Origin: Pavona decussata
Taxonomy: Eukaryota
Reading direction: 5' to 3'
Length of the DNA: 64,000 nucleotides
NCBI GenBank assembly: GCA_977016875.1
Contig: CDRNST010000214.1
Coordinates: 3,162,001 to 3,226,000, forward strand
The position numbers and the translations under genes were made by a program. A model generated the notes under the pieces. It saw only the letters and a list, made by a program, of their open reading frames with translations, was not told where the DNA came from and did not search any database. This document shows, in pieces, positions 28,099 through 41,837 of this stretch; position 1 is the first letter of the stretch; every line of letters begins with the position of its first letter.

Positions 28099-31000
28099 AT
28101 GGCAGCGAAACGCACCTCAACGCTTGTAAGTATTCAGCTGAGATACTGGTGATGCTCGTTTGTTGCTTTTCTATGCTTAGCGTGCATGAATTTCGAAAAC
28201 TTACGGGGCGTAGATGTACCGATGAATTCGAAATTACCGATGTGTTCGAAGTACCGATGAATGAACCGATGAACGTACCGATGAATTAGAAATTCAACTT
28301 CCACCCACCCCGGGGATTTGAAGTTTTGGATATTGGCTTGTTTTTAAATTCTTGCCTCCCAAGGCCAAAAAAGCCGTTCACCCATAAGTGCTGAGCTCCA
28401 AGGCATTTTCTCCACTCAGGACAAAGTTTCAGTTTCATTCAATCACCGATCATGCTGCAAACAGTGACATATTGATAACACCTTCAGAAACCATTTTCAA
28501 GCCGTTTTGAGTGAGTCATTCACGTGCAGGTTCCTTGGTTACCTTGTGTGCCAGCGGAATGTCAGACAACTCGCCCCCCAGACAACTAGCCCCAGATTAC
28601 TCGCCCCCTGATATATAGACAACTAGCCCCCAATAATGAATATGTAGACGATTAGCCCCCAATGAAAACTTATATTTTTTTGAGCTGAGAAAGTAATAAT
28701 TTCGTGAAAGAAGAATGCTCTGCTGTAAGAGCATACGAGACCAAAGCGTATCGATCGCATCGTTCGTGTAACACATGAACGTGGACATTTTTTAATCCAA
28801 AAATCGAGCTCAAAAATTTAAATCACCTGCAATGAAACAGCTCTTACCGTTTTTGTTTTATAATTAGAAGCACTCTGCGATAGAACAAGATCCAAAACAA
28901 ACACAAATATGTAAAACTAACCGCCATCTTGTTTTAAGCGCGTTCAAGAATTTGCCAGGTCGCTAAGCATATTATGATGTAAACAATGACTTTCCCTTTT
29001 TGACGCCGAATTCCAGTAAATTACTGTGCGGTAGGAATTTTTTATGTAATAATAGATGTGTTGGTCATTGACTTTTGTAGGGTTGGTGGCTCCTAAAGGA
29101 GCCGTTGGTTTTTTTTTGGTTCCTAAAAGAACCGTTGGTTTGTTGTGTGTCATCACTGCATCACTAAGTGGGAGCAGGCATCCAGCAGCTGTTTGGAGTT
29201 CTTGCGGCCTTCCTCGAAGTCATTCCATAGACCAAACAGCTTCTTCTGCATGTTTCGGTAAGTTGTTCGCTGGTGTCTCCGAAGCCTCCTGTCTGACACG
29301 AGTCGGATTTGAAGAGACACAAGTGACGCTTCCTTCTGGAGTAGTTGGATAAGCACGTACAGGGGCAGTTGAGATCTACCTTTGGCGCGTCTGTTTAAGC
29401 CGTTGTGCCATCCTTCTAGATCTTGTGGCCGCAACTGTTGACGCACGCGGTTAGCAGTTCGGTGGAGACTGTCGAGACGGGGTAGGCTGGGGCAAGGAGC
29501 GTCTGGTAACTCGTGGAGCAGAACATTGTTGACAACCTCTGATGCCGGTTTGAAGAGGTCTTTCGAGGCTTCCTGTTTGACAAGGGACTTGATTTTAGTA
29601 GCTATGAGCGCTCCGACTGGTGCGGCGTGGTTGTGGTCGTTCTTCCCCACTTCGAAATGGTTTGATGATCGCTGTATTACGGTAGCCTTGCAGCGGTTGC
29701 CCTGAAAAACAGTAAGAGTAAATCAGTAAATCAACCTAACTTAACCTAATCAATAAAACCTAATAGATAACTATTCGTCAGAGCGAACCTGATTGAGGTT
29801 AGTTAACCATAGTTTAAATTGTTTCCTTCATAAAAGCCGCTTTCGGATTTTACAGAAATAACAGCATAAGTTAAAGTTTACTTGGATCCTATGTCAAAGT
29901 CAGTGGATATTCTGGTTGGTGTGGATGGATATTTAGTTGTATTTAAAATTAATCAATTTCTTACCATAGGTCGAACGGTGCATTGCCAGTCTGTTGCGTT
30001 TACACGTTGTCTCTTAACGTTGTAGCTGTAACCCCAGCTGTCGATCAGTTTTTGTTTTCCTCTCTCGCTGGCACCCTCCACGATTTGAAACGTCAGGGGC
30101 AGGTTGACTGGCTCCACTGGTTGAGGCGTGGGCTCTTCGATCGTGGACTCCTCAATGGACGGCTGAGCTGGGAGATCATATACTGTAGACTCGAACGAGT
30201 CGGCGGCTGATGAGGAAACAGGAGGGTTGAATTCTTCAGACTCAAGGATGTCCGCTGATGTCTCTGAGTAAGCGGCTGATTGGGACACAGGTGGGTTAAA
30301 CTCTTCAGACTCGAGGATGTCTGTTGTGGTCTCTGTTACCGTGGTGCTCTCTGCGATGGGGTGCTCTAGACGACAGGACTGGCAAAACCACACGATATCT
30401 TTACCCGCCTGGACAGCAGCGCGATATTCTGGTTGAGAAATACCTGTGTGAAAAAAAAACAACAACAACAAATGTAAGAATACGGACTGATTTTATCTAA
30501 AGAAAATATGTGACATTCTCACGGCTTGTGTTTGTTGGAATTTTGTTGTTTAAGTGAATGCGATGTTCAGCTATAATAAAAACAAGTTTTAATGTCACTT
30601 ACCAGTGTAACAAGTTCTTTGGTTCCATCTCAGACAACCATCGCACTGAACCCCTTGTTGTCTCTCTCTCACAGGTTCTTTACACAGGATACAATTGTCA
30701 CTTATAGAAGCCATTCTGGTCGTTCGCGTATTGAAAACGTATTCGTTTGGTTATGAGATGTTTCTCGTATGGTGATCAATGATCGGATGAGCGTTTTAGT
30801 AGCTTTTCTGTTCTTATACACACGATGGGTTGTTTAATTAATTCGTTAGGATCACATTAAATTCATCTTAACTGTGATTTGTTGTTTTCATTCATTCATT
30901 TAATCATTTGTCGTTAAAAGGTTAACAATAGCATACATGCGTGTTTTCTGAGAGGTAAGGTAAGTTTTGCTTTGTCTAATTAAATATTAATGACTCGCTC

Positions 31001-34000
31001 ACTTTGGAACACTTTTTTAACATCGTTATTATCAATATTGTCATAAACAAACGTTTTTTTTTTTATGTAAGTTAAAGTTAAGCTAGTTAATAAAGTACTG
31101 CATTTAGCGTTCCCATGTCAGCGGCGTTCCCGCAATTGATAACCCGCGATTGATACGCTCGATCATGTGTGCTTGAAATTTTAGTTTACAAAATGTTCAT
31201 GTGTTACGCCGATTGATACGCTCGATCATGTGTGCTTGAAATTTTAGTTTACAAAATGTTCATGTGTTACGCGATTGATACGCGCGATCATGTGTGCTTG
31301 AAATTGTAGTTTACAAAATGCTCATGTGTTACGCGATTGATGCGCTCGATCATGTGTGCTTGAAATTTTAGGTTACAAAATGTTCATGTGTTACGCGATT
31401 GATACGCTCAATCATGTGTTCGTAAGTTTTGGTTTCATATTTACTTATATTTAGCTTTCTTCTTTAACGAAATTTATTTCTTACTATTATCATCTTTATA
31501 CTGGGGGCTAGTTGTCTAAAGATCGGGGGGCTAGTAGTCTGGGGCTAGTTGTCTGGGGGGCGAGTAGTCCGGATACCATGCCAGCGCGCGTGTAAGAAAC
31601 CTCTGCAAACATCTGTCCGATTCTTTGTTCTGCCGCAAACCTGGACGTGAAAATTAAAAGTCCTGTTTTTTAAGCACTAGTAATCCCAGGTGCAAGTTAG
31701 GCCCTGAGGAACACTTTCTGTTGACACATGTATGGCAGATATAGATTTGGGGCTGGTTCACACTGGTGATGGAATTAGAAAGTATAAGAGACCTTCCGTT
31801 CCAGTGTGAATCAAAAAACGAAGACAGAATCTTTATCGTAAGCTTGACAGAATCAGAATTACAAGGGTCTGAGAGTTTCCTTTTTCTTTTTATTCTGTCA
31901 CATATGATCAAGTGTGAACTGGTTGATTGGAATCAGAAGCGCAAGTAGAAGAATAAACCAATCAAATAGCTCATTCCCAATCCCTTTATGCAAGATTTAT
32001 GATGGAAAACATGGTGGCCTTCTGCCATTTTGAATAAAAGCGCTGCTTCCATTTCTGCTTCCATTGTTTTAAGTCATGCTAGGTCAGAAGATTCTTCTGA
32101 TTCCAACTCCAGTTCCGATTCCGCTTCCATTACTTCTGTTGTTAGAGTGAACCAGGCCTTACATGTATGGTTTACCTCTTAGTCTCAGAGCCCCACTGAG
32201 AACTGGACAGATGATCTTCCAGTCTGCAAGCTGTCTGGTGTGGGTTTCTTAACCAATCAGAGATACAGAGAAGATGGCGGAAGGAGGGAGGAACATGAGT
32301 TTGAGGACAGAAGCTTTCATTTTAATGTAGATGACACATATCTGTATGGTGTGTTCGATGGCCATGATGGGACTAGGGCTTCAGATTTTACTGTTCAGCG
32401 CCTTCCTGCAGAACTCTTACTTGGTCAGCTCACAGGTTTGTGTCTCAACTTTTGAAAGTCTAATACGATGCTGTTCAGTGCTTGACCTTAACTTTTTTGC
32501 TAAATAGTCCTTGGGCTAGTGTGGTATAAAATTTACTAGCCAAAAGTCATTACCTGGAAGCCAAGCCCTGAATCATGTTTGAATAATAATGATGTTTATT
32601 TGTCAAAAATGTGATAAAACCCACTTTCAAAACTTTCTTTTTTCTTGCTTCCTCTTTTGTTAATAGAATCTTTTTATCTTTCTCCTTTACTTATCTTTCT
32701 AAGACATATTCTTAAGGGACCAGCCCAGTGGCTAGTAAACCTCAAATTTTAGTAACCCAAAGCCAATATTTACTAGTCATGGTCCAGTGGACTACTGCTA
32801 AGGTCGAGCACTGCTGTTACAACTTTCAAACCAGTGCAGGGTCCTAAAATTACACTAAGCAACTTACAAACTCTATAGAATAACAGGTAAAAGACAAGCT
32901 GTATTAACAAGCAAAGAATCTCAATGCTTAAAGATAGTTGAATGACTGGTTCTAAGACCAAATTGAAAATACATTAAATATAATAAATTAATAGAAAAAA
33001 TATGTATAACCGTAGTCACTGGATATTTATTGGGGACAGAGAGGCAGACATAGGAAGCGAATGTGGATAAATGAGCACAACTGTGCTTATGTTATTAAAT
33101 ATATACTGGAACGCCCTTGATAATGAGACATACCAGGTAACAGCCTGAATAAAATTTTGCATAACCTTTATAAATTTTTCATTTAGTTAGTTTCATGTCA
33201 CAATGGTGTTTTTCATTTGAGGGAGGGCTTTTTGTAATGATAATTATTGAGAAAATGCAAGTAGTCCAGTGGGGAGCTTTTAAAATAGAGCTTTTATGCA
33301 AAGCATTGGCTGTTTGGTTTCCTGGGCCAGATTCACAAAGTTCTTCTTAGTTAAGGTATTTCCCATGTATTGTTTCTTAAAGTGCGCCTAACCCCAAAAA
33401 ATTTTAAATAAATCTTTGCACCTGTTCATAATGCATTGAGCCTTTTTGCGCCTTTTTTCAACCAAATCTTGACTTTTTATAGGCTGTAAAAGTTACGAAA
33501 TCTAGTCATCATCTGTCCCATGACCGAGCTAGTAAGGGGCATGGGTCTATTCCTTACATGACGTCACAAACAGAAGGAAGGAAGGAATAGACCCATCCCC
33601 CTTACTAGCTCGGTCACGGGACAGATGATGGCTAGATTTCGTAACTTTTGCAGCCTATGAAAGGTCAAGATTTGGTTGAAAAAGGCGCCAAATAGCGCAA
33701 TATGTTTCGAACAGGTGCAAAGATTTATTTAAGAGAAAAACAATTTGGGGGTTAGGTGCACTTTAACAATATCAAGACTGTTGTTGGACTAACAATAGGC
33801 TATTGTCAAGAAACAGTACTTGGGATACATCTTAACTTATGAGGGCCTCATAAACCCAGCCTTTGATTAGTAATTAAGAGTTATTTCAAATCTATTTATT
33901 GTACAGAACTTTTGTCTTTTCTTAATGGATAATCAGATGTCAAAAGACTAAAAACAGTGACTTTAATTTAGCCATATATCTTCTTTTGTTCATCAGCTAG

Positions 34001-37000
34001 TATGAATGATGAACAGATCAAGGCAGCTATCAAACAGGCTTTCATTGGTGTTGAGAAAGGATTTTTCCAGTCTTTTGATGACGCCTTGGCTGAGAAAACA
34101 GAACTCCAGCTACAGATGCCAGAGGTACAACTTACTATCTGTGGTAGTTGTCCTTCACTTAAATGAATAATTGGTTTTATCAATAATTAAATGCCATTTT
34201 GCTTGATTTGAAGATATTTTTCTTTAAGTCATGTGACTCATGAAAGCCCTTTCATACCACAGTTCCTTCTGATTATAAGGTCTTGCATGTTATTGGTTAT
34301 AACCCACATTCCAGAAATATTTTCAAAATTTGCATAATGCTTGTGTTTTATCAGGATTTAAAACCATGAGGCGCAGCTGAGTGTTTTTAGACCCGATAAA
34401 ACACGTGCTGCAAGTTTTTTGAACGGCTTCAAGAACATTCCTGGAAAAGCGTGTGTCAAGAGAGTTCATAACAATGACCTTTGGTGAACGTTGGAAATTA
34501 GCATACGAGAAAAACATTTAACACCAGATACTAATAGGGAGGAGGTTTTATCGGGTTTTAAAACCACTGCACGTGATGTTTTATCGACCATTTGATAGGT
34601 CGATGGGCTTATGAATTATTAATGAGTTTTTGAAGGTCTTGTTACATGCTTGATAAAAACCTATGATTATGGGCAAGATTTCCATTTTTCATTTGCAATA
34701 AAAACCTACATGTCTGATTATGGGCAAAATTTCCAAAATGAAATGCAAAACAGCAAATAAAACATTGGAGCAACATTTCCTGAAGGAATTCAAGGCCACA
34801 AGCAAAAACTCAGATGAATCTGAGCTAAAACAACAAAAAGCGAATATCTGAAAAGTCATTTGGGTCGGTTATGCTCTCAGCTCTTCAAATATCCTGAGTC
34901 TTTTATCGGGATTTTAGACCAGATAAAACACATGCTGCAGGTTTTTTGAATGGCTTCAAAAACATTCCTGGAAATGTGTGTATCAAGAGAGCTCATAACA
35001 ATTATGCCTTTAGGAATGTTAGAAATAATATTAGCATACGAAAAAAATGTTAAACACCGCATACTAATAAGAGGGAGCTTTTGTTGGGTTTCAAAACCTG
35101 ACTGCACATGATGTTTTATCAACCATTTGATAGGTCAATGGCTTATGAATTATTAATGAGTTTTTGAAGTCTACTAGATAACCTCTTAACCAGGTTTCAA
35201 ACAACTGGGGACAGTTTGCAAATATTTTCAGGGTCTGAGCTCTTATGAGGCATACCAGAAGTTTCCAGAACAAGTTAACAGGATACAGGCCTTGCAGGAT
35301 GAGATCAGTGGAGGAACAACAGCTGTGGTAGCTCTCATCTTCCAGAAGAAGCTCTTTGTAGCCAATGTGGGTGACTCCAGAGCACTCTTGTGTAAAGAGA
35401 CACCAGAGGGTAACGTCTCTGTAGAACAGGTAATAATTATTCAACAATGACAGTGATGATGATAATCATAGAGCAGTTTTTAGTTGAGTGTTGAAAGTAA
35501 TTCTCACATGGTAGTGAACCTATGTGCCAAATAAAACTTATTAAGAGTAGTTTGAATTTTGGTTACTAAAAATCTTCATTAGAATAATTAAAACTAATGT
35601 TGTCCAACATTTCAATGTTACTTCCACATTATCAAGGCAAAGTGACTGTTTGTTCATGGCTTTTGTGCTTATGTAAATAGCTTTGCATGGATGAGCACAA
35701 AAGAAACAAAATGTCTATGATATTGTTTATTGTTTTCCTCTTATGTATTCAAACCACAAAGAAACAGTCACTTTGCCTTGATGATGAAATATGATGGAAG
35801 TAACATTGAAGCATCATTGTTTTAGTTTGAATTTTACAAACAAATTTCCACTTACTTTTAGCATACATGTAGTTTTTGACCCGGCTCTTTGACTGGACTA
35901 CTGGCAAATGGTTAATGAAACCCAACCTTATACCTGTAATGCTGGTGGGGTAGGGACCTTGCAATTAATGTTACTAGTTGTTTCTTGCTGCAGAAACATT
36001 CAAATTGCAGGCCTCTAGACCCTCTCTGTAGATCCGTGGTTTGGGCATCTGACTGGTGTTCAAAGAAGATCGTGGTTTCGACTTCCTATACTGAGATTGT
36101 TTTTTTCTTTTTCTCCTGCTCATATGTTGCTTACTGTATCTTTCATATTTGATTAACAAACATGAAATAACAATACAAAAATTATTTAAGGTTACCGTAC
36201 ATACCTTCAGAGGTGTCACGTGTCCAAGCGATGTAGCGCGTCCAGTTTAAACTGTAGATACCTAAACCCCTATATCAAATTAATGCTTATAGAGCTAATT
36301 GTAGCTATCAAACTAAACCAAGAATTTTAAAATAGAATGAATTGTCGAATTTTTTACGACCTCTAAATGCGAGCATCCCAATCACGTTTTGAAAGCTACA
36401 AGTCAAAGCAAATTTTGTTTTTCACTAATTTAATTTGCTCCTCAGTTTCTGGACCCAAAGCGCTAAAAAAAATGTGTCTGCATTTTCCCATATTCAATCG
36501 CAGTGAAAAGTTACAGAACATTTTGGAAATAGGATGAAAAAAAATGTGGAGTGATCGTCCTTAAATCGCTCTCAGAGAAAAAATATTTCGAAAGAAAAAA
36601 TTCGCAGACACGTTTTTGTTGTATATAAACTAGCTACTGTCCAAATTTGAAGGCAAATGAACAAATTCCCTTTGAGTTTTAGCTCTTTAAAGTGTCTCCT
36701 CCAAGTGAAAAAATTCATTCGAGAAAACAGTGCTAAAAATTCGGCAATTCATTTTCAAAGTTCTTGGTATAGTTTGATAGCCAGCTCTATAAGCTTTAAT
36801 TTGGTATAAGGGTTCATGTATCTACCTTTTAAACCGGACGTGCTACATCGCTTGGATGCGAGACACCTCTAAAGGTATACGGTAAACTTAAACCGGTAAC
36901 ATATTTGGTTCTTTATCTTAATGTTGGTCCTGTTTCTAATAAAGTGGCTGTTGTGCATGCAACACTGCTTCTAGTAAATAATACAGAACTGCGCAAATTA

Positions 37001-40000
37001 TACAAGAAAATGTTATTTTCCCATTTATGGCTGTATTTCAGCATTTTGAGTTAATTTCCCATGCAAAGTCTATAAATCGTCATCAGGTTCATGGCTTGGC
37101 TGCCTCTGATAAGGCACTGACATTCCTGTGGAAAAAATAGAGCCTTTTTGTTGAGAGGAAGGGGTGAGGGGCAAGGAAACCTTATCCCACGTTAGGGACC
37201 ATAACCCCAAACTATTCAATGAGCTCAATTGCGTGGGGGAAAGGCTAAAAGGTTAGAGGGGTGTAGACTGGGGCAACAATGTGACCACTTCAAAAGCCTG
37301 TGCAGCTTTGTTGCTTGGATTGTAAAAGACCCATGCTCAAGGACTCAAGATTGTGACAAATAATATATATCCTGGTTTCCTTTCAATTTTAGCTGAGTGT
37401 TGATCATGTCACAAATAATGATGAAGAGCTGAAAAGACTTGCAAACCTTGGCCTTGACATTCAACAAATTCAACGAAACCATAGGATTGGGAACCAGGAG
37501 AACACAAGGAGCATTGGGGACTATGGTGTAAAGGGTGGCTACAAGGACTTTGATATTCTGAGGTACAGAAACGTTCCCTTAAAATTCAGTCGTCTACGTA
37601 ATACGTAATATATCAAACACAAGGCACTGTGTTTCATCACTAATATCATGGGTGACAAATTACTCCTTAATATTGGCATGAAATTTCAGCATTAATTTAT
37701 AATTTCACATGTGAAATTACAAAATTGCTATGGCAACATCCAGTGTTCCAGATAACTTTTAAAATCAGAGAGTCAATGAAGAATTTTGAGGGGTCAATAG
37801 CTCTGGTTCTCTCTAAATCTTCTCAAGTTTACCATTCATTTTGCCAGGTCAGGAAGCCAGGCTTCTCGGGTTTTTGACCTGAGACCCCTCTCTTATCTGG
37901 AATACTGAACGTCTCAGTGCCAAGATGGCATCCAGGTTTAAAGATGTTACAAATGAAAGAAGTTACGGCATTAAAAGACGCTGCAGAAAACCTAAATATG
38001 AGAAAGAGCACAATTAACTGGGTGACGGTTTTTGAGAACTGGTGGGATGAAAATGGCCTTGACAAAAACCCTGAGATGGTTCGTCCTGAGCAGTTGGATA
38101 AAGTATTCGAGGGGTTTTTGCCTGCGTGTGTAAACAAGACGGAACCGACCACGATTGTGAGCATAATTTGTCACCTGTGATTTTAAAACGTAATCAAATG
38201 GTCTACTCGTGAAATTAGGAAATAATTTCACTTGCTTTTTGTCAAAATTCAATTACATAATTATACGTATCAAAGACCGAGAAGAGAGTTGAAAATATGA
38301 TGCGTAGCGGAGAGTATTTTTGACAAACTACGAGGTTTTTGATATTGTGACAAAACACTGTGATGAGTGTTTGATATAACTTCTCAAATAAACTGGGGAA
38401 ATTAAGGATGCAAAAATGAGGAGTCTTTTTATCAGGTATCCAAACACGTCACGGTGCATGATTTCCTTTGTCTTTGGCTTTTGAATTATTAATGAGTTTG
38501 AGAAGTGTATATATATCAAACACGAGGAAGAGTGTCTTATCCAATTTCCAAACATCAAGAAGTGGTTGAAAATATGAGCACAGCCAAGTTATTTTAACCA
38601 GCTTTGAGGTGTTTGGAAATTGCATGAAACACTCTTTCGAGTGTTTGATGTAACTTCTTTAACCATTAATAATTCTTGGAGAAATTCAAAACTAAAATTT
38701 AGTCAAATGTACAGTATAGTTTACGTTTCATCACATATTTGAATGTCACACTTTAGGATTTATCCACAGACTGGAGAGTTCAAATCTTATTACATGTACA
38801 GCATGATAAACATGGCATCACAGACAATTAGCTTTCATGAAATATCAAATGCTCCAACATTTAGAACTTCATCCACACAGTTAGAACCATTTTTTACAGC
38901 ATGCAGTGTTACTTTTTAACAATAAACAGCACAAACACTTGAACTAATGCAGACCACCCTTGCTCATCCCTCTCAAATTATACTGGTAGCTAGTGATTTT
39001 GCCACCTACAGACAATGATTTCCCTATTACTCGGAGGCAGGGATGGCACATTGGTGAGAGCGCTCGCCTCCCACTAATGTGGACCTGGTTTGATTCCCAG
39101 ACTCAACGTCATATGCGGGTTGAGTCTGTTGTTGGTTCCTGTCCTTGCTCCAACAGATTTTTTCGCAGCTACTCCGGTTTTCCCCTCTCATCACAAACCA
39201 ACATTTCCAAATTCCAATTCGATCTGGAGAGTGTCCCCTTTACTGTCAAATGCATTTGATAATCTCATCATGGAATTATGCACTATATAACAAACTACAA
39301 ACTTATTTTTATTTATTTTACTTCTCTAGTTATGTTGACTATTATTTTTAGGGGGGCTGAGCATCTATGGAGGAATTGTCTTAGTAGTTTTTCAGTAAAC
39401 ATGTGTGGAGGGCTGTGTGAGCCATATGATGATGTTTCATGACTCATTAAAAACATCATTGCAATCAAGCAGTTGATAATAATTAACTTTGAAGAGAAAC
39501 AGAATTTACATTAAAAATAAATAAATAAATAAATTTACATGTGTACTCCAGTTTGCTGATATTGAGAACTTTTCAATCATAATATGCCATCATGTTTATT
39601 CCATTGTGCATATGCATACCACTCATTGACATACCAATCCTAGCAGTATGCAGGATGTTTGTCCCATGAACCTAGTTTAATGGCCTTAGCTCCCACGAGT
39701 CTCCTGTAGCTCAGTGGTAGAGCATCCGAACTAGTAATCAGAAGGTCTTAGGTTCAACTCCCGATAGGAGCACTCGGATTTCCTTTTTCCGAGTATGCCT
39801 GTGTCACTCACTGAAATAATACATCATTCTCATAATTTATTTTGTTGGTGTCATTTCTAAAGTGTTGCAACAGAGGAACCAGTGATAGCTGAACCTCACA
39901 TTTGTGGCGGCATCCCAATAGATGAGACATTCTTTGCTCTAGTCTTAATGTCTGATGGAGTGTACAGATCAATTGAAGATGCTGCTGACATTGAAACTAA

Positions 40001-41837
40001 TTCCAACCATGACGTTGTTTGCCTGGTGATGGAAGAGCTTCAATTCCAGAATAATCTGACTGGGGTGGCCCAGGCTGTCGTGGACAGAATAGGAAGGATA
40101 CATCATGATACATACATGAACCAACCGTGCAAGTGCCAGAAGAGAGATGACATGACGATACTCATTAGAATTTTCAAGGAGGAGATCGCTAACAGTTTGA
40201 AGAGCCCAAGAGCCACTGGAAGGCAGACAATGGCAGGTACAGAACTCTTCAGGAAGAAGTTAAAAACTTTTTTTTCCAAGGTCAGGGAAATGATTATCAG
40301 TATAAATTTTATCTCAAAGTTAGTGAATTTTTCTTTTGGCTAACAACTAGGTTCGCAAAAGAGTTTCCTTATTGGCAATGATGAAATGGCATTTCGTTGT
40401 CAATAAGGAGACGTTTTGCTGAGTTTTCATTGACACAAACCAATTTTCACTGTTCTTCCGAGACGAAATAATGCTTTTAGGAATAAAGCCAGCACTGGAG
40501 CTACAATGCTGGTTTTATTGTCAAAGCATTTGTCTTGAATAATAAGGTACTGGCACAACTTTATTGAATATTTATACATTAATCATGAACTTGGCCATTT
40601 CAACTCAGTCCAAAATTACACTGGACCCCCGCTTTCCGGACGCCCACTTAATACACACACATCATTGTTACGGACGCCCGACGTTTTGGTCCTGCACTCC
40701 CCCCCCACAAACCCCCCCCCCCCCCCATACATTTTCCTTAAAATTAACCCGCTTAAGAAGGACACTGATAAAATGGATACTTATTCTGGTCCCAACGATC
40801 TCTGTAATAAGCAAAGTTTGTCTAAATATGCGCGGGAATATAAGTACCCTCCAAAACATCTCCTCTGGTGCACTGAGTTTGGAATAAACACCCCAGGCGT
40901 TTATATTGGTAAATATGGTAACACAGTTCTAGCTTTGATGTCCGAGATGAAATCCCATAGTTTGACCTTTCAAAGAAAGCGTATTGAGCAATACTTTCCT
41001 GTGGTGCTGTTTGTTATGCTGTAAAAGGTTGATCTTTCTTTTTGAGTCGGTGGATGAAATCCTAAATTGTGACCATTCAAATTAAAGTTATTGAATATAA
41101 GATACTTCTGCTTTTGAGTCAATGAAATCCTAAAGTGTGACAATTTGAATGGACGCAATTGAACAGTATTTTCTATGGTGCTGTTTGTTTTTCTACACAA
41201 GTAACACAAAATACTTCTATCTTTTGAGCATGGACGAAATCCTTCAGTTATAAACCATTTCGTATTTTCCCGGAAATGTTGTTAGTTGGAATATCTTAGG
41301 TTGAGTTGAAAGAGTATTGAAATTATTGTAAATACATTAAAGCGCCATAATTTAAATTTTTACCTTTCTCTTTTAGGTATGCCGCCGGTGAGTCCCGGCG
41401 TTCTTCCTGTATCTGTCCCTTACAACCCAGCAAATGCAGTTTCCGGTGGTGCACCTTCCCTATTCATACCACAGGGATTCCAACCCAAACCACAGGCCGG
41501 CAACTCACCAAGCCCAACCACCTCCACCCCCACAAACGCACCGGCGCCGCAATTTGTTGTCACGAGTTCAAGGTCTGACACTCAGAGCTCTGCCTCCTCT
41601 GCGAGCGAGTCTCCTTCCACAATGAATCCAGCTGAGCCTGGAGCCGTGGCTAGAGAACAGGGCGGGGGCTTAAGCGCCGAGGAAACGCAAGAAAATGAAG
41701 GCGAAAGCAAGAAGGATGGTGAAGATGTTAGAGTAGAGCCTTACGTCGATTTCTCGGACTTTTATCGCCAGGTAGCAGAGTATGGAGAAGACTATGTTTA
41801 TGGATGGGATAAGAACGAAACTGAAGCAGCAGCTTAG
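28099..41837 (+). CDS. TAB1: TGF-beta-activated kinase 1 binding protein 1 (PP2C fold), 7 exons, ~536 aa
   Basis: Exons 28099-28125 (MAAKRTSTL), 32183-32435 (WTDDLPVCKLSGVG...QRLPAELLLGQL), 33997-34124, 35232-35429, 37393-37562, 39863-40236, 41377-41837; 1611 nt in frame. C-terminal VLPVSVPY (p38-binding type) and VEPYVDFSDFY (TAK1-binding type) motifs. Confidence 0.93.
29153..30714 (-). CDS. Transposase derivative: PHD-like finger + FLYWCH zinc finger + C-terminal LEGWHN segment, lacking most of the DDE core; 3 exons, ~379 aa
   Basis: Exons 30714-30603 (CILC...QCDGCLRWNQRTC), 30443-29965 (WFCQSC...GKQKLIDSWGYSY...WQC), 29701-29153 (RCKATV...HNH...RPQDLEGWHNGLN); canonical GT-AG sites, 1140 nt open. 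Confidence 0.75.
31145..31420 (+). repeat. 62-bp tandem repeat (~4.4 copies), subterminal in the MULE element
   Basis: gattgat(a/g)cg recurs at 31148, 31211, 31273, 31335 and 31397. Confidence 0.9.
33381..33762. mobile_element. Foldback MITE with TTAA TSD (Kolobok-like termini)
   Basis: TTAA|AGTGCGCCTAACCCC...GGGGTTAGGTGCACT|TTAA; nearly the whole element is palindromic. Confidence 0.85.
34345..34635 (+). repeat. Interspersed repeat family, copy 2 of 3
   Basis: Matches 12165-12458. Confidence 0.8.
34900..35169 (+). repeat. Interspersed repeat family, copy 3 of 3
   Basis: Matches 12165-12458 and 34345-34635. Confidence 0.78.
36190..36887. mobile_element. MITE with ~110-bp TIRs and TTAA TSD
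   Basis: ggttaccgtac...tccaagcgatgtagc...tttaaa inverted at 36780-36887; TTAA on both sides. Confidence 0.85.
37945..38150 (+). pseudogene. Probable Crypton-type (tyrosine recombinase) N-terminal coding remnant
   Basis: LKDAAENLNMRKSTINWVTVFENW...PEQLDKVFEGF resembles the NTxKST-W-F-xxW...ELDxxLxxF region of Crypton/DUF3504-associated proteins; recognised from memory only. Confidence 0.5.
39033..39320 (+). mobile_element. tRNA-derived SINE
   Basis: 5' A/B-box-like head (tggcacattggtgagagcgc...ggtttgattccc), body gctactccggttttcccctctc, (ttta)n-like tail. Confidence 0.75.
39597..39833 (+). mobile_element. tRNA-containing repeat, copy C
   Basis: tRNA-Thr(AGT)-like core at 39700-39772, with upstream and downstream sequence shared with copies A, B and D. 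Confidence 0.82.
40925..41260 (+). repeat. Degenerate ~100-bp tandem repeat
   Basis: Recurrent tgaaatcc(t/c)a...tgac...tg(a)agcaatactttcctgtggtgctgtttgtt units. Confidence 0.7.

Follow-up and report, generated by a model that had tools for sequence, protein, structure and literature searches.

TAB1 of the coral Pavona decussata appears to keep the metal center of a PP2C phosphatase, a center lost repeatedly in other animal lineages

In a 64,000-nt window of the Pavona decussata genome (contig CDRNST010000214.1, positions 3,162,001 to 3,226,000), we found a TAB1 gene whose product, as read from alignments, keeps every metal-binding residue of a working PP2C phosphatase. TAB1 is among the standard examples of pseudoenzymes, and the literature usually treats its PP2C domain as a scaffold devoid of catalysis. 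We regard it as highly probable that the gene is orthologous to TAB1 and that its intact ligand set is ancestral, and a comparison of orthologues indicates that the intact center is not peculiar to coral. The "dead" state of human TAB1 looks like a late, repeated loss, with the vertebrates representing one of many independent decays. We tentatively propose that TAB1 began as a bifunctional protein and may still be one in corals and most invertebrate phyla, acting both as an activator and scaffold of TAK1/p38 and as a working phosphatase within the complex. The label "pseudophosphatase" would then fit only the vertebrates and about a dozen lineages, each of which would have lost the enzyme independently. 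We found no report of the intact-center pattern across invertebrates in the searchable literature.

The gene consists of seven exons on the plus strand (28099 to 41837; 536 codons) and extends a previously recognized set of exons 2 to 6. The originally predicted span of 32183 to 40236 covers those five exons, but exons 1 and 7 lie outside it. Each of the six junctions is of the GT-AG type, preserves the frame, and falls at a block border in the matching mRNA contig from a related coral, and the coding frame contains no stops; exon 2, for example, has the acceptor cttAG/TCT and the donor CAG/GTTTGT. Exon 1 was the sole Ser/Thr/Lys/Arg-rich ATG mini-exon with a GT donor and N-terminus likeness; its peptide resembles MASKRSSTI of P0186, a protein from a related coral's transcript, and the sequence flanking its ATG agrees with a related coral transcript (L005). 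When each exon was scanned alone, Pfam PP2C went undetected in exons 2 and 6. TAB1 is a single locus in this coral's genome, and a canonical PPM1A-like gene sits elsewhere in the same genome (L007:1432-2346, minus strand). A comparison of two corals gave a dN/dS of 0.06 over exons 2 to 6, with a dS of 0.74, and a dN/dS of 0.02 for exon 2; coral TAB1 is under strong purifying selection.

Table 1. Exons and motifs of the coral TAB1 gene, in positions of the window
Feature	Position	Strand	Description
Exon 1	28099..28125	+	Start codon, MAAKRTSTL; GTAAGT donor after
Exon 2	32183..32435	+	WTDDLP N-terminus, RREEHEFED loop (motif 1), FDGHDG (motif 2)
RREEHEFED codons	32282..32308	+	Arg-Arg 32282-32287; Glu in Arg33 register 32291-32293
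HEFED	32294-32308	+	Motif scan
FDGHDG	32354-32371	+	Motif scan
D-G-H codons	32357..32365	+	PP2Calpha D60-G61-H62 (metal ligand, carbonyl, general acid); human TAB1 N69-G70-Y71
Exon 3	33997..34124	+	TAB1-typical helical insert; from splice sites and tblastn/blastn block borders
Exon 4	35232..35429	+	GGTTAVV, NVGDSRA; Pfam PP2C E 9.5e-13
GGTTAVV	35310-35330	+	Motif scan
NVGDSRA	35364-35384	+	Asp codon 35373-35375, PP2Calpha D146, third-metal ligand; human Thr
Exon 5	37393..37562	+	TRSIGD; Pfam PP2C E 1.1e-7
TRSIGD	37504-37521	+	Asp codon 37519-37521, PP2Calpha D199
Exon 6	39863..40236	+	LMSDGV, KRDDMT
LMSDGV	39945-39962	+	Asp 39954-39956, PP2Calpha D239; human TAB1 E290
RDDMT	40143-40157	+	Asp 40146-40148, D282; human E356
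Second motif-11 Asp	40149-40151	+	PP2Calpha N283; human TAB1 D357
Exon 7	41377..41837	+	Ser/Pro-rich tail; acceptor ttttAG/GT; stop TAG 41835-41837
p38-docking-like PVSVPY	41406-41423	+	Exon 7, tail alignment
TAK1-binding-like PYVDFSDFY	41739-41765	+	Exon 7, tail alignment

The identification of the gene as TAB1, made at first from its letters, was borne out by per-exon phmmer searches against PDB chains, in which the top match of each exon was human TAB1 and the next was Anopheles TAB1. The TAB1 E values ranged from 1e-21 to 1e-11, with other PPMs far behind, and exon 2 matched residues 15-93 of human TAB1 (2j4o) at 2e-21. The closest named proteins were those annotated [quoted passage not shown] in Montipora, Pocillopora, and Nematostella, and the exons of the window showed 78-82% identity to two corals and 72% to Nematostella. 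An AF2 model of an 87%-identical coral protein (P0186:1-380; pLDDT 89.6) was placed by Foldseek on TAB1 structures with a TM of 0.85-0.91, ahead of active PPMs, for which it was 0.52-0.62 by model length and 0.57-0.80 by target length. The tail docking motifs, also part of the original prediction, both lie in exon 7 and align with those of vertebrate-type TAB1 and other orthologues. The putative TAK1-binding segment RVEPYVDFSDFYRQV at 41730-41774 aligns with the vertebrate-type RVEPYVDFAEFYRLW, and in the orthologue alignment A1 the motif's Tyr and Phe are at least 90% conserved; the putative p38alpha-docking VLPVSVPYNP ... PSLFIPQ aligns, on sequence evidence, with the vertebrate-type PVSVPYSS ... 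SLVMPSQ. The coral protein would be composed of an N-terminal PP2C-fold domain and a disordered tail docking p38 and TAK1, as in vertebrates. By these matches, the locus is the single-copy TAB1 of a scleractinian-type coral.

A motif scan of the three plus frames located all seven catalytic motifs that had been quoted for this gene, each within the frame-consistent GT-AG model. The Asp codon of FDGHDG begins at 32357 as predicted (32357-32359); LMSDGV was found as well, but the position 39951 assigned to it is a Ser codon, and the Asp is encoded three nucleotides later. The human residues given in the original prediction proved correct in the phmmer alignments to human TAB1 chains, which read FNGYDG, NVGTNRA, TRRIGD, MSEGL, and RHEDMT, the last aligned with coral KRDDMT in chain numbering. 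The residue mapping from human TAB1 to PP2Calpha was taken from a published source (PMC8622459). Against the coral's own PPM1A-like ORF, hhalign paired FDGHDG with FDGHAG, in agreement with BLASTP, as well as NVGDSRA with NCGDSRA, IGD with LGD, and LMSDG with IGCDG. The motif 1 loop was not aligned with that ORF by either hhalign or BLASTP; the E-D of coral HEFED aligns with human TAB1 E50-D51, and we read it as PP2Calpha E37-D38 from the conserved ED motif.

The coral protein has the E-D pair, D-G-H, the third-metal Asp (GDS), Asp199, the D-G of motif 8, and the motif 11 Asp of active PPMs, and it lacks a basic phosphate-binding residue at the Arg33 position. Both reservations attached to the original prediction are justified, as counting back from the E-D pair places a Glu at -5 relative to the Asp, preceded by two Arg at -7 and -8, and the final motif is DD rather than DN, the N283 equivalent being Asp in every TAB1 sampled. 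The residue after the DGH His is Asp, and neither of the two residues that active PPMs generally prefer there, i.e., Gly or Ala. The D243 equivalent in the coral protein is Arg; this position takes no part in enzymatic activity (PMC13142519).

We assembled 88 TAB1 sequences, of which 87 were scored for the four metal-ligand Asp residues, and all four were present in 49. The full set was kept in all anthozoans, gastropods (16 of 16), spiders (5 of 5), and hemimetabolous insects (6 of 6) sampled, and was also found in crabs, most annelids, a brachiopod, and a nemertean. On the best tree, ligands were lost in approximately 15 separate places, including vertebrates, ambulacrarians, bivalves, and Hymenoptera, with 17 state changes at D239 and 12 at D282, and the ligand-losing lineages have longer branches. 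Since an intact ligand set occurs across many phyla and was lost so many times separately, ancestral TAB1 probably had an intact metal center, as originally suggested; among the invertebrate phyla, no other state is as common as the intact set.

The M2-side residues D38, D60, and G61 are almost invariant among TAB1s (the D38 equivalent is Asp in 88/88 orthologues and that of E37 is Glu in 87/88), whereas the M1 ligands are labile. Several lineages show partial losses. All ten bivalve sequences covering motif 11 have Gly for D282 and keep D60, H62, D146, and D239, with D199 kept in all but one; every hymenopteran sampled has Arg or Gly for D239 and keeps the rest except D199; and hemichordates carry D239N with nearly all other catalytic residues kept. 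D199 is Asn across arthropods. Arg fills the M1 site in Hymenoptera and barnacles. The Arg33 register is occupied by Glu in most TAB1s and by Arg in none sampled, the His is followed by Asp, Asn, or Glu in most, compared to Ala in PPM1A, and the D243 equivalent is Lys, Arg, or Gln.

The complete PPM center is very probably the ancestral and still the commonest invertebrate state of TAB1, held by selection where it is kept; vertebrates and about a dozen other lineages each lost it on their own. In our proposal, the coral domain would load two, and probably three, Mn2+/Mg2+ ions, bind phospho-Ser/Thr at its bridging-hydroxide center, and hydrolyze it. Besides its scaffold/activator role, the protein would therefore be a genuine phosphatase within the TAK1/p38 complex, although probably a slow one or one of narrow specificity. 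The catalytic part, namely that coral TAB1 loads metal and hydrolyzes phospho-Ser/Thr, seems to us evenly balanced, and we would expect a detectable phosphatase activity about as readily as none. D239 and D282 are invariant across whole old clades, unlike neutral sites, which argues for selection on the center. Loss of the basic residue at the Arg33 position would also weaken activity without necessarily ending it, as the K88A mutation at the corresponding position of PPM1H lowered activity more than 20-fold but left some of it (PMC8567228), and Arg33 itself has been characterized as flexible and as assisting in substrate guidance (PMC13142519).

The strongest alternative, which we consider a real possibility although somewhat short of an even chance, is that TAB1 binds metal but has been catalytically dead from the start, having lost hydrolytic competence at its origin with the replacement of Arg33. 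The acidic residues would then stabilize the fold via metal or hold a phosphorylated partner without turnover, so that the domain reads or traps phospho-sites within the TAK1/p38 complex. The occupancy of the Arg33 register by Glu in coral and most TAB1s, and never by Arg, counts against catalysis and fits this alternative, particularly given that, according to a review, mutating the conserved Arg suffices to abrogate PPM activity (PMC13358185). The acidic or Asn residue after the His in most TAB1s and the replaced D243 equivalent count in the same direction, and so do the approximately 15 losses of M1 ligands and the 17 and 12 state changes at D239 and D282, the latter being unusual for an enzyme whose activity matters. 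Moreover, bivalves (D282G), Hymenoptera (D239R/G), and hemichordates (D239N) have held nearly all their other catalytic residues for hundreds of millions of years, and the first two groups, having lost one ligand and kept most others, indicate that such residues can persist for a noncatalytic reason. The nearly invariant M2 side and labile M1 side would also suit human TAB1, which binds one Mn at M2 yet is inactive (PMC12002173). However, a complete binuclear center that also has the third-metal Asp, the general-acid His, and the Asp paired with that His exceeds what a reader needs, and an accessible intact PPM center is expected to hydrolyze a bound substrate. The residual activity of the PPM1H K88A mutant and the invariance of D239 and D282 throughout the gastropods, spiders, and anthozoans sampled also speak against a TAB1 that was dead from the beginning.

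It is far less probable that the residues are functionless leftovers of a slow lineage, free of selection in their own right. Evolution is slow in corals, Owenia, and brachiopods and fast in the degenerate lineages, and the M1 ligands have been lost many times, all of which would agree with such inertia. However, dS already reaches 0.74 between two corals with so low a dN/dS in exon 2, and the same five residues are invariant in anthozoans and in the gastropods, spiders, and hemimetabolous insects sampled, clades that diverged hundreds of millions of years ago and in which unconstrained sites would be randomized. An artefact, whether from an incorrect gene model, a pseudogene, or the confusion of a canonical PPM paralogue with TAB1, has a negligible chance, the missing Pfam matches of two exons scanned singly rather than as a joined model being outweighed by six in-frame junctions that match an mRNA contig, an open frame at low dN/dS, TAB1-specific tail motifs, and a single TAB1 locus separate from the PPM1A-like gene.

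If the intact center of invertebrate TAB1 is active, corals, molluscs, spiders, and many insects would have a phosphatase built into their TAK1/p38 innate-immunity and stress module, one that vertebrates lack. TAB1 would then also offer a natural set of recurrent changes from enzyme to pseudoenzyme (about 15 on the best tree), suited to asking what goes first and what replaces it, e.g., Arg in M1. If the protein is inactive, a strongly conserved full binuclear center without catalysis would pose a puzzle about the role of metal-loaded pseudo-PPMs.

Human TAB1 (MAP3K7IP1; 2J4O, 2POM, 2POP, and 5NZZ), a PP2C-like pseudophosphatase and the orthologue of the coral gene, is 47-48% identical to the model of the coral-type domain (TM 0.85-0.91). 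In both, the PP2C fold precedes a PVSVPY-type motif for p38 docking and a PYVDF..FY motif for TAK1 docking; they also have in common the E-D pair, the Gly of DGH, and the second motif-11 Asp, and Arg33 is missing in both. In contrast, human N69, Y71, Thr (in NVGTNRA), E290, and E356 correspond to Asp, His, Asp, Asp, and Asp in coral, and the motif 1 loop is RREEHEFED in coral and GTESHPPED in human TAB1. The losses of metal-ligand or catalytic residues that define the human pseudophosphatase (D60N, H62Y, D239E, and D282E) have no match in coral, which shares only the absence of Arg33; with Asp, His, Asp, and Asp at those four sites, the sequence of coral TAB1 argues against classing it as a pseudophosphatase. 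The solved invertebrate orthologue, Anopheles gambiae TAB1 (2IRM), keeps the D-D pair of motif 11 (SRDDVT) as coral does, but both it (MSSGL) and the other dipteran sampled have Ser at the D239 position, where coral has Asp.

The archetypal active PPM, PPM1A/PP2Calpha, and the coral PPM1A-like gene have the same fold as coral TAB1, which carries PPM1A residues at E37, D38, D60, G61, H62, D146, D199, D239, G240, and D282. It differs from PPM1A in having Glu where Arg33 would be and an Arg-Arg pair 2-3 residues before it, Asp for Ala63, Arg for D243, and Asp for N283, along with an extra long helical insert and the docking tail. PPM1H is an active enzyme whose Lys88 occupies the Arg33 position, which shows that a basic residue other than Arg can bind phosphate there (PMC8567228), but it keeps a basic side chain where TAB1 has Glu. 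PHLPP is likewise a PPM-family signaling scaffold whose catalytic residues are found in early-branching relatives and were later lost. For PHLPP, an active ancestor-like protein has been proven by assay, and the loss is placed before animals, while the TAB1 residues persist in most invertebrate phyla and were lost many times.

All seven motifs quoted in the original prediction were recovered where it had placed them in a scan of the three forward frames (see the table). The open stretches that carry them have canonical splice sites at their edges, and a single reading frame runs across every junction; a nine-codon exon 1 and exons 2 to 7 therefore give a coding sequence of 536 codons. The span first proposed for the gene holds exons 2 to 6 but misses exons 1 and 7. 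The window exons were searched singly, without joining, and P0186, a transcript-derived TAB1 protein of a related coral, was used as a stand-in for full-length work because, across the exons, it shares 87% identity with the window and has all the motifs unchanged. It was found by a protein search with exon 6 and a cluster look-up, and its 534 residues are encoded on Logan contigs of 1.9 kb, which come from two sequencing runs. The contig that encodes it, L005, looks like an assembled mRNA. An apparent sequencing-adapter remnant (…AGACGTGTGCTCTTCCGATCT) occupies L005:1-25, so that the contig does not start with coral sequence.

The exon borders are the exact break points of the P0186 tblastn and L005 blastn matches in the window, and the MAAKRTSTL of exon 1 has its counterpart in MASKRSSTI, the N-terminus of P0186. 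Summed per exon over exons 2 to 6, the comparison with L005 gave a dS of 0.74, a dN of 0.045, and a dN/dS of 0.06, with a dN/dS of 0.02 in exon 2. The border match and the low dN/dS exclude a pseudogene or a mis-modeled gene; chance motifs were likewise rejected, given the frame-consistent gene, its agreement with L005 and P0186, and the low dN/dS. Searched in six frames, the whole assembly gave TAB1 at the window locus only, which excludes a second copy.

Features of the coral TAB1 gene (window positions) and of two other PP2C ORFs in the same genome assembly (G000)
Feature	Position	Strand	Remarks
Exon 1	28099-28125	+	nine codons MAAKRTSTL, then GTAAGT
Exon 2	32183-32435	+	carries ED and DGH; canonical splice borders
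HEFED	32294-32308	+	three-frame motif scan
FDGHDG	32354-32371	+	three-frame motif scan; Asp codon from 32357
Exon 3	33997-34124	+	canonical splice borders
Exon 4	35232-35429	+	canonical splice borders
GGTTAVV	35310-35330	+	three-frame motif scan
NVGDSRA	35364-35384	+	three-frame motif scan
Exon 5	37393-37562	+	canonical splice borders
TRSIGD	37504-37521	+	three-frame motif scan
Exon 6	39863-40236	+	canonical splice borders
LMSDGV	39945-39962	+	three-frame motif scan; Asp codon from 39954
RDDMT	40143-40157	+	three-frame motif scan
Exon 7	41377-41837	+	ends in stop TAG
PPM1A/B-like large single exon	L007:1432-2346, contig C6	-	G61, GDS, LGD, CDG likewise at human PPM1A numbering
PP2C-domain ORF, 566 residues uninterrupted	L009:1012-2712, contig C46	-	YDGYSG, NAGNIRA, ATNGVW, SHDNIT

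The introns hold several repeats. Intron 1 spans 4 kb (28126-32182). In intron 3, a unit of about 530 bp occurs twice in tandem (34385-35098), seen as direct repeats 34385-34475/34912-35002 (90% identical) and 34497-34565/35030-35098 (81% identical) spaced by 527 to 533 bp, and repeated FLNGFKNIPG-like open stretches stem from these units. Hairpin-like inverted repeats lie in intron 2 (33442-33695; 114-nt arms with 90% complementarity, separated by 26 nt) and intron 4 (36201-36878; 96-nt arms with 86% complementarity, separated by 486 nt), and both look like MITE-type insertions. A long C-rich low-complexity tract with runs of 8 and 15 C is found in intron 6 (40697-40728).

Single-exon Pfam scans detected PP2C in exons 4 and 5 only; because exons 2 and 6 alone are too short or divergent for Pfam, we relied on phmmer against the PDB. 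The best PDB match of each exon was human TAB1 (2J4O, 2POM, 2POP, 5NZZ, 8XI8; E 1e-21 to 1e-11), followed by Anopheles TAB1 (2IRM), with other PPMs far weaker. An AlphaFold2 model of P0186:1-380 (62-sequence alignment input; pLDDT 89.6, pTM 0.88) superposed on TAB1 structures with a TM of 0.85 to 0.91, active plant and human PPMs coming next. In the exon 7 tail, VLPVSVPYNP...PSLFIPQ and RVEPYVDFSDFYRQV align with the p38-docking and TAK1-docking segments, respectively, of vertebrate-type TAB1, and among named proteins the closest are TAB1-like ones, from Montipora (82% over the exons), Pocillopora (78%), and Nematostella. The PDB matches, fold, tail segments, and named relatives together therefore establish the gene as coral TAB1, as originally proposed.

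Alignment with the PDB structures set coral FDGHDG, NVGDSRA, LMSDGV, and KRDDMT against human FNGYDG, NVGTNRA, LMSEGL, and RHEDMT, which confirms the human motifs originally quoted. By PDB chain numbering, the human positions include N69, Y71, E290, E356, and D357, which are reported to replace PP2Calpha D60, H62, D239, D282, and N283, with Arg33 "missing" (PMC8622459). The same coral genome encodes a canonical PPM1A-like protein (the L007 ORF) with R33, E37, D38, D60, and H62 at human numbering; its open frame continues into an apparent intron before motif 11. An hhalign comparison of the TAB1 alignment with this ORF paired FDGHDG/FDGHAG, NVGDSRA/NCGDSRA, IGD/LGD, and LMSDG/IGCDG. Both lines of evidence bear out the claim that catalytic residues are retained: as aligned, coral TAB1 has the residues of E37, D38, D60, G61, H62, D146, D199, D239, G240, and D282 (PP2Calpha numbering). 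It differs from PPM1A in having Glu in the Arg33 register, with Arg-Arg at -7 and -8, and in Ala63 to Asp, D243 to Arg, and N283 to Asp. By sequence, motif 1 was not alignable to the canonical PPM, as hhalign and exon 2 BLASTP against L007 both begin at DGH. The RREEHEFED loop that leads into motif 1 (32282-32308) hardly varies among corals, gastropods, brachiopods, and spiders, and vertebrate TAB1 has GTESHPPED in its place; a His four residues ahead of the motif 1 Asp is at least 90% conserved, vertebrates included.

The alignment across metazoans first suggested as a check showed the full ligand set to be widespread. We scored by column 88 TAB1 orthologs, gathered from protein searches and named via cluster look-ups. 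All four ligand Asp, mostly with the His, were found in every anthozoan sampled (seven scleractinian-type sequences plus the window, Nematostella, and octocorals, the last with Tyr in place of His). The four Asp, again mostly with the His, were also kept in 16/16 gastropods, 5/5 spiders, and 4/5 annelids, as well as in the brachiopod, nemertean, crabs, mayflies, Orthoptera, stick insect, and hemipteran. Ligands were replaced in vertebrates (three of the four Asp), amphioxus (D282P), and hemichordates and echinoderms (D239N/G/H, Asn occurring in both hemichordates and a crinoid; asteroids and holothurians also D282E). D282G occurred in the sponge Oscarella and in all ten bivalve sequences reaching motif 11, and D239H in Hydra. 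At least one ligand was replaced in the cephalopod, beetle, sandfly, nematode, springtail, barnacle, centipede, scorpion, and mite. Hymenoptera had D239R/G, with Arg in four of five, and the barnacle also had Arg, which places a basic side chain at the would-be metal M1 site.

By column, D38 was kept in 88/88 orthologs, G61 in 87/88, D60 in 84/88, H62 in 80/88, D146 in 71/88, D282 in 64/87, and D239 in 63/88, and the N283 equivalent was Asp in 87/87. Loss on the M2 side is very rare, and the M1 ligands are the labile part of the TAB1 center. After the scored columns had been dropped, 84 rows gave a maximum-likelihood tree on which a "complete versus degenerate" label changed 15 times, only 4 of them forced by well-supported branches, and was strongly clustered (0/500 shuffles as low); the root-to-tip path per clade, descriptive only, was 1.0 for degenerate versus 0.69 (p = 0.002). 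No stand-in role for Arg33 is claimed for the upstream Arg: loss of the Arg at -8 set against ligand-Asp loss gave a raw 2x2 Fisher p of 0.019, but phylogenetically independent pairs were too few to be informative, as they were for His62. Judging from these orthologs, the intact ligand set is not a coral peculiarity, and on the simplest reading, the TAB1 of the cnidarian-bilaterian ancestor had the full set.

Whether coral TAB1 would show detectable metal-dependent activity is, on its residues, about an even bet. A complete binuclear center with a general-acid His, its Asp partner, and a third-metal Asp exceeds the needs of the fold or of a phospho-reader, which favors activity over a metal-binding, nonhydrolytic domain. 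Also in favor, replacing PPM1H Lys88, at the Arg33 place in PPM1A, with Ala costs >20-fold of the activity but not all of it (PMC8567228), and Arg33 has been described as flexible and D243 as having no part in enzymatic activity (PMC13142519). Against activity, none of the sampled TAB1s has Arg in the Arg33 register, and according to one review PPM activity is abrogated when this Arg is mutated (PMC13358185). The many losses of M1 ligands suggest that any activity is dispensable. The nonhydrolytic domain follows close behind the active enzyme as an explanation, since bivalves, Hymenoptera, and hemichordates have one ligand gone and keep nearly all other "catalytic" residues, so that noncatalytic constraint can hold these residues, and human TAB1, though inactive, retains a single Mn at M2 (PMC12002173). 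On the side of activity, the intact center is invariant in several clades that date back hundreds of millions of years, and it lies in the most constrained exon, so selection maintains it where it is kept. Pure inertia or an artifact is unlikely.

Another PP2C-domain ORF of this coral, at L009, has His62 changed to Tyr and D146 and D239 to Asn, making it a candidate second PPM-fold pseudophosphatase. Reviews class TAB1 plainly as a pseudophosphatase, and the full-text literature searched holds no mention of intact catalytic residues in invertebrate TAB1, although an earlier mention in a structure paper or in phosphatome surveys or databases is possible. The nearest parallel to coral TAB1 is a 2025 study of PHLPP2 that follows the same logic and in which an active, ancestor-like enzyme was proven by assay.
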